A stretch of 63,071 nucleotides of DNA, the filler included, from Lenisia limosa (taxonomy: Eukaryota > Protista > Breviatea): the NCBI GenBank assembly GCA_001655205.1. It is 13 parts of 13 records of this genome, joined end to end, with 100 filler letters (N's around TTAATTAATTAA, not from the genome) between each part and the next. Parts side by side here need not be neighbours in the genome. Positions count along the whole stretch, not along the records: positions 44,491 to 52,042 come from LPNZ01009093.1; positions 52,143 to 54,529 come from LPNZ01010140.1; 11 more parts are not named here. One strand, 5' to 3'. Position numbers and translations under genes: made by a program. Below the pieces are notes generated by a model that worked only from the letters and a program-made list of their open reading frames with translations, searched no databases and had not been told where the DNA came from. Below are positions 72 to 54,629 of this stretch, piece by piece. Position 1 is the first letter of the stretch, and the number at the start of each line of letters is the position of its first letter.

Positions 72-5340
<5,269 letters not shown>

Positions 5341-5354
5341 GGTGGGGGGGGGGG

Positions 5355-5454
5355 NNNNNNNNNNNNNNNNNNNNNNNNNNNNNNNNNNNNNNNNNNNNTT
5401 AATTAATTAANNNNNNNNNNNNNNNNNNNNNNNNNNNNNNNNNNNNNNNNNNNN
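5355..5454. other. Artificial scaffold linker (44N-TTAATTAATTAA-44N); also at 9486, 18331, 20735, 32459, 35693, 37406, 40621, 44391, 52043, 54530, 58022
   Basis: Identical 100-nt spacer with stop codons in all six frames, seen 12 times. Confidence 0.98.
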
Positions 5455-8400
5455 AGGCTGATAAGGACGCCATGAATTCACCAAGACAAACTCCCTCGCC
5501 TTCATCTAAGGCAAAATCACCCCCCACCCCCGAAGGATCAATTGCTCTCCTTGTTCTCAGATACATCGGGTAGGACTCATTAACATTATTACCTGCTTGT
5601 TTTGACAATGGTTCTGTTCTTCTCTTCATTACCTCCCAGAGCGCGCTTGACTGTCATCTATTCACACGGTACTTCTGAGGTGAGTTCTCTTGAGAGTAAC
5701 ACATCCCCAATATCAGTATTGAGCTTGTTTTCTGTTATTTCACATTCCAACGTTTTTAGGATCTTGGAACTTGCCTGCCTTATATGAAAATGATAAGTCA
5801 CTACTGCAAGGTCTGCAACGGGTACTCTTCCATTGGTCATACAACCCCTCACACTCCAGGTGAATGTGATACTCTATGACTACAGGGGATATGGTGTTTC
5901 CAGCTCAGGTAGGGCAATTCTCATGTCTTCCTCTTGACAAACGTTGTTTCCCTGATCACCTTTTAGTCCAATGCTCCGAAGCAAGCACACGAGAAGATCT
6001 CAAAGCAGTCATTAGACATGCGTGAGTGGCTTTCAAAACATATTCCACATGATTACTCCTTTGCTGACAGTGTAGACGCGAGGTTCTAGGTATTCTTCCC
6101 GAGTCCATTGTTCTCTTTGGGCGGAGTCTTGGTACCGGTGTTTCATGCCAGGTTGCTTCCGAGGAAACTTTCGCCGCTGTGAGGGGGGGTATTACTATTT
6201 TTTAAAAAAGAGAGAAGAAGATGCAATAAGGTTTTATCAATAGTATGATATACATAACTTTTTTTTAAAACCTTATTGAATCTTCCTCTCTCTTTTTTAT
6301 ATATTTTATATTATATCATATGATACAGTATGTATAAAATATACATTGACAAAGAAAAGGTGTGACCCCTTTTCAAATGCAAATTAAGGGTGAAAGAATG
6401 GCATATCGGGGGCTATCCTGAGATTATCTTGCTTTTGTTATCTTTGCCACAATAGCAACATGTTTGGAACATGCTGACACCCTAGGTGATCCTGCAGTCG
6501 GGCTTCACATCCATTGTAGGGTCAAGGCTCCGATGGCCTGCTCTGAGCCCTTGGACAGATATGTACCGCAATATTGACAAGGTTGGGGGTTTGGTACATT
6601 GTTCATTGGAGCTAATTGTCAACTGTCTTACGCTTTGTCACTTCGCATTTCATAAAACTTATGCCTTTTCATGCCTTAGGTTACATCAATTAATGCGCCG
6701 ATATTTGTCATTCATGGAACAAAGGACTCTGTCACTCCGTTCCGATGCAGCAAAGTACGTTGGCTGGCTGGGTCATCTTTCATTAACTCTTCAGGCACTC
6801 TACATCAAAGCCAAGATCAAAGGGGGATTTCAAGAGGTCAAGAAAGCCGGACATAACAGTGAGTGCCATACCCTTCCTTGACTTGTATAGATTTGGAGAC
6901 TGTTTTTGGCTTTGGGCAGTATTGCTTGACGCTTTCCAAGTGGTTTGCACAGACTGTAGCCTACCGAAATCTTTCCTCTCCGTCGTTTCCTCGAGATTTG
7001 GCCGAATCGTTCAGAGACCTCTACCCCTCTCCGAACGTCACACCTAGCCCTGAGATTCCCGTCACGGGGGCCATCGAGTCTCTCAATGTAGGCTTCTTTT
7101 TTCAATAGGAAAGATTTGGTTTTTGTGGTTATTGGAACTTGGCTTTTTTTATTCAAGAAACGACAAGATTGCAATACAATCCTGTAATACCCCTTGTTGA
7201 AAATTTTTACTCTGCAGTTGCAAAACGCAGCCTCGAAAAGTTCGATCAAATCCCTGACCCCCTCGCCGCCGCCCGAAGACAGCAGGACAGGTAGCAAGAT
7301 CGGCTTTGAGAATGCGCTGTCCCCCGGGACGCCTTCATCTGGTGATGACGGCACCAACATGCTCTCAATATCGAGGTTCCCTGAAACCCCCCCTGTACTG
7401 TCGCAGCCGGACCTGCCCATGCCGAAGCTGGCCCAAGCAACGTCCAACGTTCCGTCGGCTCTCAAACCGCCGTCCAGCCCCTTCCACAGCCCGCGGCCGG
7501 TCAGAAGTGAAGCTTTCCTGCCCAGACCACTGGTTAGCGAATTTGCGTGTATTGCCCTTGCTTGTCCGTTGCCCAGTGCTTCAGCTCACACTTTAGTCTT
7601 CGGGCTCGGAGTGGCAGCGTTCAGCCTCGTCCTTGACCTCTCTTTCCCAGGACAGTGATAATGAATTGTTGAGTCCCTTACACTCCCCCAAAGTCATATC
7701 GGGTAAGATTGTTGATATGTAAAAGAAATCGCGAAAAGGGAAATAGACGACATTATACAGTGAACGATTGGTAGAGATTCCTTAAGCCTTACACCCCAGA
7801 GCATAATGGTGTCAGTGCCTGGGCCGAAGATAGTTCCGCCGCCCTCGTGACCGTTCAGGTCTTGGGGGCTTTTATGGCTTTCTTCTGTCAAACAAACTTG
7901 ATACAATGGGGAGACATGGTGTATCCTTTCATCCGGCAACCTTGACCATTAACGTTTTTAGAAAATCCATGGAGTTACAGCGAAGGACTCCCCGAGCATC
8001 ATCAGGAGGGACCGCATGCTGCCCAACCTTGAGGATCTCATTCTACCCGGCACGCCCAGGGACAAGAAACGGGTGTCCAAATCCGTGCTTCGAGAAACCG
8101 ACTTTCTCTTGTCCACTGCTGTAGAGGACCTCTCGGATTGTGAAGGTTGGCCCCAAGCTGAGTGTAAAAGTGAATGGCAGAATGTTGTCAATTGAATCAA
8201 GTTCAGAGCTAACACCTCAGTTCCGGCACCCCGAAGGGAGCCCCGAATACTCCTCCCCTCCGGGCCCAACGTTCTGAGGGCAGTTCCACGACCCACACCG
8301 CCCTCGACGCCGGCTCTTGGTGGCCTGAACAGCAGCCCCTCCATTGCCAGAGACAAGAAAAAGTCTCTCAGATGGGGCGGTAATCTCGGTAGGTTTTGTT

Positions 8401-8563
8401 ATTATAATGACTTTACCTGATGTGATTTTAAAACCTGTATGTTCCCTTTTTAGTGGTTCGGACTAAAGAATCCTGGCTGATCCTCCCCCCCCCCCCTCCA
8501 GGTGAAACGACTTTTGACGAGAAAAAGCCTGAACCAAAAGCAGCTGTATTACGAATACAATAG
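5455..8563 (+). CDS. ABHD17-like alpha/beta hydrolase (putative protein depalmitoylase) with long Ser/Pro-rich C-terminal extension; 5' partial
   Basis: Exons VNVILYDYRGYGVSSSG; CSEASTREDLKAVIRH; IVLFGRSLGTG (nucleophile Ser); VILQSGFTSI...DMYRNIDK; APIFVIHGTKDSVTP (Asp); KKAGHN (His); inferred last exon ends TAG at 8561-8563. Confidence 0.85.
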
Positions 8564-8728
8564 AGATAAGGTTGGTTGAATTTTGAAACTTGACACGTTT
8601 CACAGTTTTAGGTTGGCGCCTGGAGTGCAGTGTTAGTTTATAATATTTAAGAGTGTATGATATAGTAGTGGTATTGGATGTTTCTATTTATTCCCTTTCC
8701 ATTGAACAAAGGACAGTTCTGCATTGCA

Positions 8729-9315
8729 CTAGACAGGGGGAATGACAGTGCGACAAAACTTCCCATCAACGTCTGCAACAATCACTACCTGTAGGGTCAG
8801 AGATTTGTAAAAAAGTGACTTCATCAAATATCTCATCAAAGCCCCCCCCCCCTCCCCAACAAAGTTGATTTCCAGTACGGCCTTCTTTTTACTTATCACA
8901 GTTGCCTTGAGCATCTGGGTGCTCTGTAGACTGGCTTGGTCAAAGTCATCTGGGTTGAAGGCCGGGACCTGGGAGGGGAAGGGGGTCAAATTGATAGGCA
9001 GTCAGTGGATCAACTCAGTCTGTGAAAACAACCACAAAGACGAACAGGAATAATAAGAGAAGTTTCAAAATTAAAACTATCAGTAATACACACAAGTCGA
9101 AGCCTTAAATTATAACAAGCACATTCACCCAACAATATTAACTCGATAAAAGTTAAAAAGGCGCATGCGGGGAGTAGAGGGGGTCGGCTGTCAGAAAGCA
9201 ATAAGAGGCCCCCCCAAACTTGGACAGTAATGAGAGTTTTTCCTGGGTTGACAGTGTTAATGTCTTTTGTGGCAACAGTCATGACCTCTTCAGGATCGGT
9301 AACGTCGAAGCAGTA
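8729..9315 (-). CDS. 3' exons of an uncharacterised protein
   Basis: Exons YCFDVTDPEEVMTVATKDINTVNPGKTLITVQ, VPAFNPDDFDQASLQSTQMLKAT and VVIVADVDGKFCRTVIPPV* with canonical splice sites. Confidence 0.55.
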
Positions 9316-9585
9316 CTAAACATTTAATATGAAAAGGAATTATATCATATAATAATACTATTGTATCATGTAGTTAATGATATGATATAGTATAGTAATA
9401 TTACATAGTATGTGATGTCAAAAAGTATATATATATAGGTGAGTGCACACGACCGCGACCTGTAACATAACCGCGACCGCTTTTCNNNNNNNNNNNNNNN
9501 NNNNNNNNNNNNNNNNNNNNNNNNNNNNNTTAATTAATTAANNNNNNNNNNNNNNNNNNNNNNNNNNNNNNNNNNNNNNNNNNNN

Positions 9586-9660
9586 CACCCCTCATCACAC
9601 TCCGCATCACACCCCTCATCACACTCCGCATCACACCCCTCATCACACTCCGCATCACAA
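9586..9660. repeat. Minisatellite, 24-bp unit x3
   Basis: cacccctcatcacactccgcatca repeated at scaffold start. Confidence 0.85.
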
Positions 9661-9665
9661 CTCAC

Positions 9666-9762
9666 CAGGCGTCACTTCGGTTACAAAATGACGAATAAAT
9701 ATGGTACTTATCGAGGATTAATCGAGGATTCAGCCTTATTTGGAACCTAAAGTGAAGCTCTC
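9666..9762. mobile_element. MITE family 1, degenerate copy
   Basis: ggcgtcacttcggtt ... aacctaaagtgaagctct with atcgagga core repeats. Confidence 0.6.
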
Positions 9763-9924
9763 ACTCCACCCCCCCCCCCCCNNNNNNNNNNNNNNNNNNN
9801 NNNNNNNNNNNNNNNNNNNNNNNNNNNNNNNNNNNNNNNNNNNNNNNNNNNNNNNNNNNNNNNNNNNNNNNNNNNNNNNNNNNNNNNNNNNNNNNNNNNN
9901 NNNNNNNNNNNNNNNNNNNNNNNN

Positions 9925-51665: not shown

Positions 51666-52143
51666 GAGGGGATTACACATACATTGCGGCGCATCTACTT
51701 GGGATTCTTGTGAAAACGGAATTCTTATCTTTTACATACTTTTATGGAAATTTGAAGATATTTATGAGGTCACCAAATAATAAAAGGAAATCACAGGTCG
51801 CTGTGCCGTAGTGTAGAACGAAGTTATTATCAAGGATTTATCGAGGGAGTTTATCAAGGGCTTATCGAGGGTTTATCGAGGGGTTTCGAGGGTTCTATGG
51901 AGGGTTTTGATGTGGCGATGATGTCATCCTCTTATTAGCTTGATGTGTGGACGGCTTCAGCCAGATACAACCTTTTTACTTTTATTTCTTATATATATAC
52001 ATGTATATAAAGTATGGTGTACATGTATATTTACTGAGGGGGNNNNNNNNNNNNNNNNNNNNNNNNNNNNNNNNNNNNNNNNNNNNTTAATTAATTAANN
52101 NNNNNNNNNNNNNNNNNNNNNNNNNNNNNNNNNNNNNNNNNNG

Positions 52144-52311
52144 TTCCATAAATTTATTAGGAGCAATCCAAATGTAAAATGGTATATAAAGGTAATCCAT
52201 ACAGGGACAAATATGAAAGAGAAGTTTTACTTTGAGAGATATTATCAACGTATTTATGCTCCTATTGGAAGCTATAGTTATAATTCTAAGACCCTTAAAA
52301 AGGTGTTTTAG
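52144..52311 (+). CDS. C-terminal fragment of a possible GIY-YIG endonuclease
   Basis: FHKFIRSNPNVKWYIKVIHTGTNMKEKFYFERYYQRIYAPIGSYSYNSKTLKKVF*; the E-x2-Y...YN ending resembles the GIY-YIG core C-terminus; N-terminus lost at scaffold edge. Confidence 0.4.
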   Translation, partial: FHKFIRSNPNVKWYIKVIHTGTNMKEKFYFERYYQRIYAPIGSYSYNSKTLKKVF

Positions 52312-52326
52312 AAATATATTTTTTTA

Positions 52327-53193
52327 CTATTCTTCTATAACCCTATATCTCCCTTTTCTCACCTCATCAGCATATTTAACATAGTCAGGGAATAAGTATT
52401 TCCAATATCTTTTCCAATAAGGTTCTATTTCTTTTTCCATCTTTAAGTATTTTTCACTTTCATCCCCAGCTTCTGGATATAAATCATTCAAAACTAAATC
52501 GGTGTTCATCAAATTTATCCAATGGTCTTCATCATCTTTATCAACTCCTCGACCATCTTCCATAGCATTCAATATTAATTTTCTTTGTTTACTAGGAGGA
52601 AACATAATTAGGGCTGGTGTTTGGAATCTAAGATCTGATAAGTATCTATCTTTCATATATTCTAGTTGATTAAACTCTTCGGTGTTTGTAACCCTCATTT
52701 CTTCAGTACTTCTTAATTCTTTTCTTTGACTAACTCTACATGCTTTACATGTACCTCTATAACCTCCAGAAGATAGTTTTTCAAAATCAGAATTTGGAAG
52801 TTTTAGTTGACAAGATTTACACTCTTGATATTTACTAACATCCTCTTTCGGTTTTCTTCTCTTTATCTTTGAACATTCTATACAATAGGTTTTAAAGGTA
52901 GTGCCTTCTGAATTATTTGGGGAGAAATTTTCCTTCTTGTTTAGATGTCTATGACAACTTATACAATATTTTGTATCTACACAGTCTACACAAGTAGGTT
53001 TGAATTTTGTATTCTCCTTATTTTTAGATATAAAGTATTTTGTATCTCTAATCTTGTTACAAACATTACACTTCTTGTTTTTTCTACAAGGTATACATAC
53101 ACTTTCGAACCTTGTCTTTTCTTTATTTTTTGGAACAAAATTATTTTTGCTAACTCTCTTTTTACATTCAGTACAATATTTATCTAGGGTCAT
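52327..53193 (-). CDS. 288-aa protein with four tandem CxxC...F...CxxC zinc-ribbon repeats and an unknown acidic C-terminal domain
   Basis: CTEC..F..CIPC, CNVC..F..CVDC, CISC..F..CIEC, CKSC..F..CKAC; intronless and Lys-rich, typical of large-DNA-virus and PLV ORFs. Confidence 0.8.
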   Translation of the reverse strand: MTLDKYCTECKKRVSKNNFVPKNKEKTRFESVCIPCRKNKKCNVCNKIRDTKYFISKNKENTKFKPTCVDCVDTKYCISCHRHLNKKENFSPNNSEGTTFKTYCIECSKIKRRKPKEDVSKYQECKSCQLKLPNSDFEKLSSGGYRGTCKACRVSQRKELRSTEEMRVTNTEEFNQLEYMKDRYLSDLRFQTPALIMFPPSKQRKLILNAMEDGRGVDKDDEDHWINLMNTDLVLNDLYPEAGDESEKYLKMEKEIEPYWKRYWKYLFPDYVKYADEVRKGRYRVIEE

Positions 53194-53247
53194 TTATAGG
53201 AAAAAGAAAAACACATTTATTTTTTTCTTATTTTTTTTAAAAAAATG

Positions 53248-53875
53248 AACACTAGTGTGGGGTCAATAAATAATTCATACTTGCTTTACCCCCCTATAGT
53301 ATGTTCTAAAAATGTTTGTACAGTTTGTATATTTTATATAGAACGATCTAGACTCAATTATATTATTGACTCCACAACATTGTTCATTTATTAGTAAACA
53401 ATAAAATATATTAATTAATATAAATAATTTATACTTACCTCTCCCTCAGTAGATTCTAACAAACAAGGTTGTATAATATTATTAGCTCAATTATATAGAC
53501 TCAATTATATTATTGACTCCACAACATTGTTCATTTATTAGTAAACAATAAAATATATTAATTAATAAACACTTATATGGAGTCAATAAATAATTCATAC
53601 TTACTCCATCCCTATAGTATGTTCTAAAAATGTTTGTATATTTTATATAGAATGATATAGACTCAATTATATTATTGACTCCACAACATTGTTCATTTAT
53701 TAGTAAACAATAAAATATATTAATTAATGAACACTTATATGGAGTCAATAAATAATTCATACTTACTCCATCCTCTATAGTACGTTCTAAAAATGTTTGT
53801 ACAGTTTGTATATTTTATATAGAATGATCTAGACTCAATTATATTACTGACTCCACAACATTGTTCATTTATTTA
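53248..53875. repeat. Tandem array of about 162-172-bp units (about 3.5 copies), each with an internal inverted repeat; further partial copy at 54403-54529
   Basis: Unit starts at 53248, 53568 and 53730; GGAGTCAATAA ... TTATTGACTCC in each unit. Confidence 0.92.
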
Positions 53876-53932
53876 TACAATTCTATGTTGGTATTTCTAA
53901 AGAGGAAAAAAATAAGTTCCCTAAGGATTTTA

Positions 53933-54381
53933 TCATTGAAATAATTTTAAAATATTTTCTCTTGTTGGTTTAATTCCAAGTATAAATAGAATACAGTAAT
54001 AACCACAAAAGATACTGTTCACTTTTTGTAACCTCTTATCAACAACTTCTTTTAGTCCATAATTTTCCAATTCTTGGATTGGGGGGTGACCAAAACTGTC
54101 AANNNNNNNNNNNNNNNNNNNNNNNNNNNNNNNNNNNNNNNNNNNNNNNNNNNNNNNNNNNNNNNNNNNNNNNNNNNNNNNNNNNNNNNNNNNNNNNNNN
54201 NNNNNNNNNNNNGGTGAAAACAGTAACAATTGTTTGGTACGCAATTTCTAATTTCAAATAATGTTAATGGTTTAATCTCGAAATTTCCTAGTTCTACCAG
54301 GGTGTCCAAGGGCTCCACCCCTCTGGTATCTAGGATATGGAGCTCCAAATCCGCGTTGGGATGCATATTTATCAATCTCAT
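53933..54381 (-). CDS. Adenain-like (clan CE) cysteine protease of Polinton/PLV/virophage type; gap in the middle
   Basis: KPLTLFEIRN ... [110 N] ... FDSFGHPP ... RLQKVNSIFCGYYCILFI. FDSFGxPP and QxxxSxxCGxYC are hallmark Maverick/adenovirus protease motifs; the catalytic His is expected within the gap. Confidence 0.82.
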
Positions 54382-54629
54382 TTGCTCCTCTTNNNNNNNN
54401 NNCCTATAGTATGTTCTAAAAATGTTTGTACAGTTTGTATATTTTATATAGAATGATATAGACTCAATTATATTATTGACTCCACAACATTGTTCATTTA
54501 TTAGTAAACAATAAAATATATTAATTAATNNNNNNNNNNNNNNNNNNNNNNNNNNNNNNNNNNNNNNNNNNNNTTAATTAATTAANNNNNNNNNNNNNNN
54601 NNNNNNNNNNNNNNNNNNNNNNNNNNNNN

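Follow-up and report, generated by a model that had tools for sequence, protein, structure and literature searches.

The 2.4-kb scaffold at positions 52143-54529 (LPNZ01010140.1) of the DNA analysed here from the Lenisia limosa assembly is very probably part of a small capsid-type dsDNA virus-like element of the polinton-like virus or virophage kind (Preplasmiviricota). A fragment of this kind had been proposed in a first-pass annotation of the window, i.e., the whole stretch of 63,071 nucleotides, and the proposal is borne out by the presence of an adenain-like protease, an A32-like ATPase and a capsid candidate on the same element. Such capsid-type elements are common in eukaryote genomes; polinton-like viruses and virophages occur in great abundance, often in endogenous form, and possibly shield protists against giant viruses.

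Results

Gene content of the scaffold

The scaffold is AT-rich (20-35% GC) and holds no long non-coding, host-like stretch, in agreement with the first-pass annotation, which had set it apart from the host scaffolds as intronless and very AT-rich. The description as three tightly packed ORFs applies to ORF A and ORF B, which are 15 nt apart (Table 1), but not to the protease gene, which is separated from ORF B by about 740 nt that consist mostly of a four-unit repeat array. Moreover, a fourth gene fragment, namely the end of a gene for a 188-aa basic protein, was absent from that ORF count.

Table 1. Features of the scaffold, in window coordinates
Feature	Position	Strand	Basis
GIY-YIG nuclease gene (ORF A), C-terminal 55 codons and stop	52144..52311	+	frame open from the scaffold's left edge, which cuts the gene
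ORF B, 288 aa	52327..53193	-	ORF and translation
Promoter-like AT-rich block, immediately upstream of the ORF B start	53194..53243	-	similar blocks precede most genes of both elements
Repeat array, four direct units of about 147-176 nt	53244..53900	.	TRF, repeat-family and inverted-repeat finding, unit alignment
Adenain-like (clan CE) cysteine protease gene, split by a 110-N assembly gap	53933..54381	-	ORF, relatives, contig L004
188-aa basic protein gene, last 39 codons and stop	54272..54391	-	translation equals the C-terminus of P0009
10-N gap, then lone 127-nt repeat-unit copy	54393..54529	.	100% identity to L004 56-182

The identification of ORF A as a GIY-YIG nuclease gene holds through its full copy on contig L003, which has one mismatch in 1101 nt to window positions 52143-53243, but not through the window itself, where the C-terminal codons alone are present and the GIY-YIG motifs lie outside. 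The full gene on L003 passes the Pfam cutoff for PF01541 (E 9.6e-10; 39.1 bits, cutoff 22.6), and the copy in a related sister element matches Pfam GIY-YIG at 3.4e-11.

The N-terminal half of the ORF B product is built of four modules with two CxxC pairs each, of zinc-ribbon type (eight CxxC motifs in total), and is followed by an acidic C-terminal half with no assigned fold. No Pfam family was found for this protein, and a word-indexed search of 5.8 billion proteins returned the self match only. It could be a zinc-ribbon DNA-binding or nuclease-derived accessory protein. Its gene is missing from the corresponding position in the sister element, which also appears to be devoid of the repeat array, so that both would be present in the scaffold's element and absent from its sister.

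PHROG profiles of the type "endonuclease / endonuclease VII" match ORF B in four stretches (E 1e-6 to 5e-4). Together with the low GC content and the dense intronless ORFs, these phage profiles could be read as signs of a bacterial, phage or organellar contaminant. We consider such an origin extremely improbable, since the PHROG matches are confined to the Cys modules, the other seven proteins show no PHROG family at E≤0.001, tblastn of the element's ATPase against 50,697 phage records gave no match, scans for tRNAs and Rfam families found none, and the protease relatives accompany pPolB, Pox_A32 and VLTF3 genes. A contaminant, which the first-pass annotation had wanted to see checked, is not indicated by any PHROG, phage or PDB match of bacterial kind.

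An adenain-like protease gene

The product of the gene split by the 110-N gap is an adenain-like cysteine protease of clan CE, and the string RLQKVNSIFCGYYC, quoted in the first-pass annotation, is present in this minus-strand ORF. A 13.3-kb ENA metagenome contig (L004), which is letter-identical to window positions 53655-54102 and 54213-54392, has 111 nt (37 codons) in place of the gap and an uninterrupted ORF of 149 codons. As the size of the gap is an estimate, it follows from this alignment that the two sides of the protease are out of frame in the window only through the estimated length of the N-run. The catalytic Asp, the Gln of the oxyanion hole and the Cys are located within the window, and the catalytic His would fall into the unread 110-N stretch; the product of the L004 gene (P0002) carries a His in the gap-equivalent part, where the His motif had been expected.

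When compared to an HMM of 25 relatives that was built without it, the C-terminal protease piece of the window scores 54.7 bits and places its Asp, Gln and Cys-Gly in conserved columns, and the N-terminal piece finds no homology support from the family HMM. Relative to the sister element, no protein-level conservation is seen in the first 31 codons, and conservation begins past the overlap with the upstream gene. The latter encodes the 188-aa basic protein (P0009), overlaps the 5' end of the protease gene in a different frame and is cut by the 10-N gap; the protein is 88-94% identical to its sister-element counterpart, with a dN/dS of 0.09.

The family assignment was made through relatives and not by a direct Pfam match. 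Pfam (including PF00770) gave no match for the pieces or for the whole 149-aa L004 product, PHROG and PDB sequence searches returned nothing for the pieces alone or for the whole product, and a word-indexed protein search with the protease piece yielded the self match only. Among 1.84 billion representatives, 28 relatives were found at E≤1e-3. His, Asp and Cys-Gly are invariant in all 26 of 26 family members, the Gln is present in at least 90%, and Pfam Peptidase_C5 is matched by 12 of the 26 (E≤0.01, best 3e-8). Compared against the PDB, the family profile finds adenain at an E-value of 7e-9, ASFV S273R at 6e-6 and SENP1 at 0.3. The fold was checked on P0024, a relative that shares 37% identity with P0002 in the family alignment, and not on the protease itself. 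The AF2 model of this relative (pLDDT 92.5) has adenain as its top Foldseek match in the PDB (2.6e-7, TM 0.65-0.74) and an adintovirus adenain as its first match in BFVD (1.8e-9, TM 0.80), where Sputnik V9 (2e-5) and proteins of Tetraselmis virus, moumouvirus and Aureococcus virus are also found.

One could nevertheless imagine that the viral look of the protease is superficial and that its gene is a cellular one of Ulp1/SENP type or is carried by a transposon or plasmid that has no capsid: clan CE is common to cellular SUMO proteases, two of the 26 relatives match Pfam C48, and the capsid protein of the element is unproven. From our point of view this is highly improbable, because the family profile favours adenain over SENP1 (7e-9 vs 0.3) and the top fold matches are adenains, as the first-pass annotation had anticipated in calling the enzyme adenain-type rather than SENP/Ulp1. 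Further, genes for an A32-like ATPase and a capsid-like protein belong to the same block, and the genes of the element are intronless, AT-rich and preceded by a common upstream block. As part of a capsid-forming element, the protease would cleave precursors of the capsid or core within the assembled particle, in the manner of adenain and the virophage proteases.

The wider element

On contigs L003 and L004, the scaffold's element has genes for a DUF4116-repeat protein, for an A32-like packaging ATPase and for two GIY-YIG nucleases, and L004 also encodes a fibre-like protein. In total, about 12 kb of the element were recovered (L003, the array and L004 positions 530-9860), with the left end open, and within these 12 kb no polymerase, primase, helicase or integrase and no terminal repeats or element ends were found. 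The sister element shows about 82% nucleotide identity to that of the scaffold. Judged from the alignments of eight gene pairs between the two elements, which display dN/dS values of 0.09-0.43 and no internal stops, all eight genes compared are under purifying selection.

The ATPase (P0005) has a P-loop and matches Pfam ATPase_2 at 34.9 bits (cutoff 33.2), and Pox_A32 is not matched directly. In phmmer searches its matches (to 3e-7) are A32-type ORFs on over 30 IMG/VR contigs that also bear the protease, and Pfam assigns two of the matched ORFs to Pox_A32. In the element, the ATPase gene is followed by those of the 263-aa protein, the large protein and the protease in the same order as in uncultivated viral contigs, and the nearest relatives of the protease and the ATPase are located on contigs of this kind of 12-30 kb. 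Relatives of the protease adjoin pPolB, A32, Prim-Pol/helicase, fibre and VLTF3 genes; a narrower family alignment finds 63 relatives in IMG/VR, whose contigs measure 4-30 kb and carry A32, Prim-Pol and pPolB genes. For the two best relatives, the contigs were too short for gene context.

The capsid candidate is a protein of 521 aa (P0007). Its AlphaFold model, calculated from a two-sequence alignment, is poor (pLDDT 40), and the Foldseek matches of this poor model in BFVD are mainly double-jelly-roll capsid proteins of many families (TM 0.2-0.25). Its C-terminal 60 residues weakly match the large ORFs beside the protease in relatives (14-18 bits, compared to ≤5 for shuffles), and an hhalign comparison of the C-terminus with the large ORFs of related contigs gives an E-value of 5e-5. 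The profile of P0007 matches nothing in IMG/VR and no PDB chain at E≤10, the protein has no Pfam match, including Capsid_NCLDV, and no PDB match is found by the profile built on 32 large ORFs of related contigs. The fold matches and the weak C-terminal matches suggest that P0007 may be a double-jelly-roll capsid protein. L004 carries an A32-like ATPase and a capsid candidate, two of the genes for which the first-pass annotation had proposed a search of the assembly. That the lineage is undescribed, as the first-pass annotation had supposed, is in line with the search of 5.8 billion proteins, which returned one sister besides P0007 itself and, for the 288-aa ORF B product, the aforementioned self match. 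A penton candidate of 263 aa (P0006) matches a 256-aa ORF at the same position in contig L017 (1.7e-7) and has no PDB match; no penton protein was identified with confidence in the element.

A different origin that has to be considered is a giant virus (Nucleocytoviricota), of which the scaffold could be a genome fragment or an insertion. GIY-YIG nucleases, DUF4116 repeats, zinc-ribbon proteins, clan CE proteases and A32-type ATPases also occur in giant viruses, and the BFVD matches of the protease model to Tetraselmis virus, moumouvirus and Aureococcus virus would fit. However, the capsid candidate matches neither Capsid_NCLDV nor any other Pfam family, giant-virus core genes are lacking in the 12 kb, at 149 aa the protease has the short length seen in small elements, the contigs of its 63 IMG/VR relatives measure only 4-30 kb, and L004 exits the element after about 9.5 kb. 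We thus regard a giant-virus origin as very unlikely and retain the small capsid-type element as the preferred reading.

Repeat array, upstream blocks and the right end of the scaffold

TRF finds a period of 162 in the repeat array, with 93% matches, and every unit holds an inverted repeat with 34-nt arms (repeat families D1-D3, inverted repeats I11/I12). Contigs L003 and L004 both terminate within the array, and the core of the repeat unit is absent from IMG/VR. The 127-nt piece at the right end of the scaffold matches a part of L004 that lies inside the array downstream of the protease. Upstream of the protease, L004 continues into the 188-aa gene instead of a repeat unit, and as such the 10-N join to the end piece is probably a scaffolding artefact. 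A length of 127 nt is a common maximum k-mer length of assemblers. An arrangement with repeats on both sides of the protease was rejected, as the right-hand unit is the lone piece behind the 10-N gap and is contradicted by L004.

Most genes in both elements are preceded by a block that consists of a T-run followed by a CTATAA-like motif, with 3-10 nt between the end of the motif and the ATG. The number of AT-rich motifs in L004 is not above chance (14 vs 10.8 expected), whereas their placement before start codons is non-random. The AT-rich block, with its CTA-type motif at the end, may represent the promoter of the element, and it could possibly be read by the transcription apparatus of a giant virus, as is the case in virophages. 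Mavirus-type elements offer a parallel, as they have a TCTA late-promoter motif (PMC8547959). By this analogy, the promoter-like block is the one feature that hints at a dependence of the element on a giant virus.

Integrated element or free virus

The window contains no host flank, as the first-pass annotation had stated. L004, in turn, passes from about 9.5 kb of the element into 3.3 kb of GC-richer, intron-like DNA with a poly-C run, a CA microsatellite, a GT-type splice-site-like boundary and EGF-like, Cys-rich, exon-like pieces. Because of this transition, we lean towards the view that a copy of the element is integrated in the genome of a eukaryote, with the host junction being known from one short-read contig that is possibly chimeric.

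It is conceivable, if less probable, that the element is real but belongs to a free or episomal virus or virophage that was co-sequenced, and that the host-like end of L004 is an assembly chimera. The depths of the element's contigs are unequal and rather high (26.5x for L003 and 58.9x for L004, in addition to 113x and 135x), a near-perfect palindrome of 145 nt, at which assemblers can mis-join, lies exactly at the composition boundary of L004, neither a second junction nor a target-site duplication or terminal repeat was observed for the element, and its genes are intact and under purifying selection. On the other hand, the element and the GC-richer, host-like DNA are spanned by a single contig, and protists very commonly contain such elements in endogenous form (PMC10120064), which is why we prefer an integrated copy.

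Discussion

The element shares its small AT-rich dsDNA, capsid candidate, A32-like ATPase and adenain-like protease with the protease-encoding polinton-like viruses (Gossevirus group, cluster VC35; PMC7805220, bioRxiv 10.64898/2026.06.19.733378), which likewise have endonuclease genes and a capsid protein without BLAST-level similarity to virophage capsids. It differs in that its capsid candidate has only one relative in 5.8 billion proteins and only a weak C-terminal link to the large ORFs of the IMG/VR contigs. It also has no lipase, tyrosine recombinase or replication gene in the recovered part. Polinton-like virus genomes comprise about 14-40 kb with a replication module; the roughly 12 kb of the present element, which are open at the left end, yielded no such module.

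With virophages such as mavirus and Sputnik (PMC8547959), the element has in common a putative morphogenesis set of four genes that includes a clan CE protease, for which Sputnik V9 is a fold match (2e-5), and a short common motif just upstream of most genes (TCTA in mavirus; PMC8547959). Virophages can further integrate into eukaryote genomes, which is possible for the element, too. In contrast to virophages, the profile of its capsid candidate has no sequence match in the PDB, and pPolB, an rve integrase and long terminal inverted repeats are absent from the recovered part of the element. Among the fold matches of the poor model, a single fragment of a virophage capsid is listed, at rank 15.

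The third group to be compared are the Mavericks/Polintons and adintoviruses. An adintovirus adenain is the best fold match of the protease family (TM 0.80), the A32-like ATPase is alike, and adintovirus and adomavirus capsid proteins are among the top BFVD matches of the poor capsid-candidate model. However, the pPolB, retrovirus-like integrase and terminal inverted repeats that define Mavericks were not found in the element's 12 kb, from which the ends are unavailable, the protease is shorter (149 aa), and the accessory genes (two for GIY-YIG nucleases and those for the DUF4116 and zinc-ribbon proteins) are atypical. With adenain itself, the human adenovirus protease (PDB 1AVP/1NLN; Peptidase_C5), the protease shares the order His, acidic residue, Gln, Cys, although the identity is about 18-22% in structural alignments, the score is below the Pfam C5 threshold and the C-terminal part is shorter.

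One could tentatively speculate that the two sister elements represent an unsampled, family-level branch of the polinton-like virus and virophage assemblage. Such a branch would reside in an intron-rich eukaryote and would be characterised by (i) its own capsid type, (ii) a protease gene and a downstream GIY-YIG gene that overlap the end of the preceding gene and have no conserved start codon of their own, and (iii) a promoter that might tie expression to an unknown giant virus.

[quoted passage not shown] In this context, the present work describes two related elements whose capsid candidate has no other relative in 5.8 billion proteins, yet whose adenain-like protease and A32-like ATPase are recognisable. 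It further demonstrates that a gapped scaffold of 2.4 kb can be resolved via protein look-up in metagenome assemblies. If the junction on L004 is confirmed, the host of the element would be named. Overall, the element and its sister would add a lineage to the protease-bearing polinton-like viruses.

Assembly of the element and a sister element

In a word-indexed protein search, the C-terminal piece of the protease matched P0002 (68 aa, 100% identical over the piece), which is encoded on the ENA metagenome contig ERZ3820729 NODE_1179 (13,263 nt; loci L001 and L004). This contig contains window 53655-54102 and 54213-54392 letter for letter with 111 nt between them and, since it also holds one open frame of 149 codons across this region, the protease gene is continuous across the gap. 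Judging by the contig, the frame offset in the window is due to the estimated length of the N run and not to mutation. The catalytic His of P0002 falls in the stretch unread in the window, and the first-pass annotation, which had placed the missing His motif in the 110-N gap, is borne out by the His that the L004 product carries there.

Window 52143-53243 shows 1 mismatch in 1101 nt to L003 (NODE_5619, 2595 nt), another contig from this sample. As L003 and L004 both terminate within the repeat array and match the two halves of the piece, the window scaffold joins them via the array, though L003 (26.5x) has less than half the depth of L004 (58.9x). GC content is 20-35% across window 52143-54529. 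The lone repeat unit behind the 10-N gap conflicts with L004, and its 127 nt equal a typical maximum k-mer length of assemblers; for both reasons it is probably a scaffolding artefact.

The same sample, and also an NCBI assembly, contains a sister element (contigs L005, 113x, and L002, 135x) with the same gene order, about 82% DNA identity and roughly twice the depth. Since internal stops are absent and dN/dS amounts to 0.09-0.43 over eight sister gene pairs, the genes of both elements are functional or were so until recently; apart from interruptions at assembly gaps or contig ends, no broken gene was found in either element. The GIY-YIG genes of the sister element directly follow the protease, so that ORF B and the repeat array (~1.6 kb) represent a presence/absence difference between the two.

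Features of the window piece and of the matching contigs
Sequence	Position	Strand	Feature
Window	52144-52311	+	ORF A, GIY-YIG gene tail; frame open from left edge, 55 codons, stop at 52311
Window	52327-53193	-	ORF B, 288 aa, putative zinc-ribbon protein
Window	53194-53243		AT-rich leader, 50 nt, between ORF B and repeat array
Window	53244-53900		Four-unit direct repeat array; units 147-176 nt, each with internal inverted repeat (34-nt arms)
Window	53933-54381	-	Protease gene, split by 110-N gap
Window	54272-54391	-	3' end of 188-aa basic protein gene (last 39 codons and stop); overlaps protease 5' end
Window	54393-54529		10-N gap and lone repeat-unit copy, 127 nt
L004	874-983		Overlap of 188-aa gene and protease ORF
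L004	1530-2162	-	210-aa protein gene (L002: 58-633)
L004	7096-9480	+	794-aa fibre-like protein gene
L004	9582-9637		14-nt tandem repeats in AT-rich spacer
L004	9862-10006		145-nt near-perfect palindrome; 72-nt arms, 92% complementary, 1-nt centre
L004	10000-13263		GC-richer stretch
L003	1229-1965		Two tandem GIY-YIG ORFs (L002: 1759-2504)
L003	2060-2593	-	DUF4116 protein gene, runs off contig end

An adenain-type protease family

Neither the protease pieces nor the whole 149-aa L004 product had a sequence match in Pfam or PDB. An exhaustive phmmer search of 1.84 billion representatives with P0002 returned 28 relatives at E<=1e-3, mostly of 110-190 aa. His, the Asp of the Asp-Ser-Phe-Gly block and Cys-Gly are invariant in the family alignment (26 of 26), and Gln occurs in 90% or more of the members. 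Against an HMM of 25 relatives, from which the query had been left out, the C-terminal protease piece in the window scored 54.7 bits and the N-terminal piece gave no match.

Pfam Peptidase_C5 is matched by 12 of the 26 family members (best 3e-8) and C48 by two. The family profile matched adenain at 7.3e-9, ASFV S273R at 5.6e-6, chlamydial deubiquitinases at ~2e-4 and SENP1 at 0.3. For the AlphaFold model of the relative P0024 (pLDDT 92.5), the top fold matches in PDB were adenovirus proteases (2.6e-7, TM 0.65-0.74) and the top BFVD match was an adintovirus adenain (1.8e-9, TM 0.80), and further entries of the BFVD list include a mastadenovirus protease and Sputnik V9. The adenain-type assignment made from the window sequence, for which a better alignment to SENP/Ulp1 had been named as the refuting outcome, hence holds, given the stronger adenain than SENP1 scores and the adenain-type top folds.

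Over its first ~110 nt, the protease ORF coincides with the 188-aa gene, which is read in a different frame. When the two sister elements are compared, protein-level conservation of the protease begins only at residue 32, immediately past this overlap, and the 188-aa protein is 88-94% identical; no conserved ATG was seen close to where the conserved portion of the protease begins.

Gene content

On L004, the protease is followed in order by genes for the 188-aa basic, 210-aa, 521-aa, 54-aa and 263-aa proteins and a 282-aa ATPase, with genes for a 391-aa, a 43-aa and the 794-aa protein on the opposite strand. The ATPase scores above the Pfam ATPase_2 cutoff (34.9 vs 33.2 bits) and matches, to 3e-7, ORFs of A32 type on over 30 IMG/VR contigs that bear a protease; Pfam calls two of these ORFs Pox_A32. 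Protease relatives are encoded on 63 IMG/VR contigs (4-30 kb), the annotated ones of which also have Prim-Pol/helicase, endosialidase-chaperone-domain fibre proteins and endonuclease VII, and two other relatives adjoin pPolB, VLTF3 and Pox_A32 genes. The element and the viral contig L017 agree in having the ATPase, the 263-aa protein, a large ORF and the protease in this order; on L017 it is a 256-aa ORF that matches the 263-aa protein, at 1.7e-7.

The 521-aa protein had no Pfam, PHROG or PDB match, and its sole relative among 5.8 billion proteins is its 68%-identical sister. Its AlphaFold model is poor (pLDDT 40), and the BFVD matches of this model are dominated by double-jelly-roll capsid proteins at E 1e-8 to 1e-3 and a TM of only 0.2-0.25, from adomaviruses, adintoviruses, an asfa-like virus, medusavirus, a virophage, STIV, an ascovirus, pithoviruses and tectivirus-like phages. 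Independently of this, the last 60 residues of the protein match the C-terminal ends of 440-680-aa ORFs near the protease on 32 related contigs (HMM 14-18 bits vs <=5 for 200 shuffles; hhalign E 5e-5, probability 68%). We are thus fairly confident in regarding it as the putative major capsid protein.

The 210-aa protein has an N-terminal CxxC, a weak thioredoxin-like match (E 0.16) and, judged by eye, a hydrophobic C-terminal segment; this segment and the CxxC suggest a membrane protein rather than a penton. Asn/Thr-rich repeats occur in the 794-aa protein, whose C-terminus gives a weak C1q-like match (E 0.099). As its gene occupies the position of the endosialidase-chaperone-domain fibre genes in related viral contigs, it may be a host-recognition fibre.

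Leftward, the piece extends into L003, which holds the full GIY-YIG gene of the ORF A tail (Pfam 9.6e-10), a second GIY-YIG gene (Pfam 3.9e-6) and a DUF4116 protein with at least six repeats (Pfam 1.7e-66). The DUF4116 gene may be part of the element or of the DNA around it. In both elements, the downstream GIY-YIG ORF (that of ORF A) overlaps the end of the upstream one and has no ATG before the catalytic motifs; dN/dS values of 0.10 and 0.14 indicate purifying selection on the two ORFs.

The eight CxxC motifs of ORF B make up four modules that resemble one another, and the C-terminal half that comes after them is acidic. Matches to PHROG endonuclease VII profiles are confined to the Cys modules, and ORF B had no Pfam or PDB match and no relative in the protein search. 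Our best guess, held with low confidence, is a zinc-ribbon DNA-binding accessory protein. The repeat array, with units of ~160 nt, sits between the 3' end of the protease gene and the 5' end of ORF B; its unit core was not found in IMG/VR. The array may serve as an origin or a regulatory region, or it may belong to an inserted cassette.

Probable integration into the host genome

The window piece contains no host flank. Past the 794-aa gene, L004 has an AT-rich spacer containing tandem repeats and then the palindrome. The latter sits exactly where AT-rich element DNA turns into GC-richer DNA; it could mark an end of the element, be a small transposon of the host or be the site of a mis-join. 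The 3.3 kb beyond it (~40% GC) look like a eukaryotic gene region. They have no long ORF and carry a poly-C run, a CA microsatellite and a boundary resembling a splice site, together with three exon-like pieces, all on one strand, whose Cys patterns are of EGF type (weak match to Pfam cEGF, E 0.001). From our point of view, integration of the element in the host genome is somewhat favoured, the main alternative being a chimeric join at the palindrome, for which the unequal contig depths leave room.

Relationship to known elements

Polinton-like viruses are defined by capsid protein, minor capsid protein and ATPase, and most lack a protease; exceptions are the Gossevirus group and cluster VC35, which their protease links to Mavericks (PMC7805220; bioRxiv 10.64898/2026.06.19.733378). 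Endogenous copies are widespread in protists (PMC10120064). Set beside the named groups by their descriptions, the element fits in as a new, very divergent member of the polinton-like viruses. The Maverick hallmarks pPolB and rve integrase, as well as a virophage-type capsid, were not found in the recovered part of the element.

In the 45 nt upstream of starts on L004, L003, L005 and L002, a promoter-like block of 25-30 nt recurs in very similar form before most genes of the two elements (A-run, T-run and a CTA-type motif whose end lies 3-10 nt from the ATG). ORF B has a variant of it in its leader; it is missing before the protease and the 43-aa ORF. Counted over all of L004, its core pattern shows no enrichment (14 vs 10.8 expected), but of nine occurrences in the viral part, five fall 16-25 nt ahead of a start codon, in sense orientation. 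Since virophage genes bear similar short motifs, which correspond to the late promoters of the respective giant viruses (PMC8547959), it is reasonable to suppose that the element, too, would depend on a giant virus.
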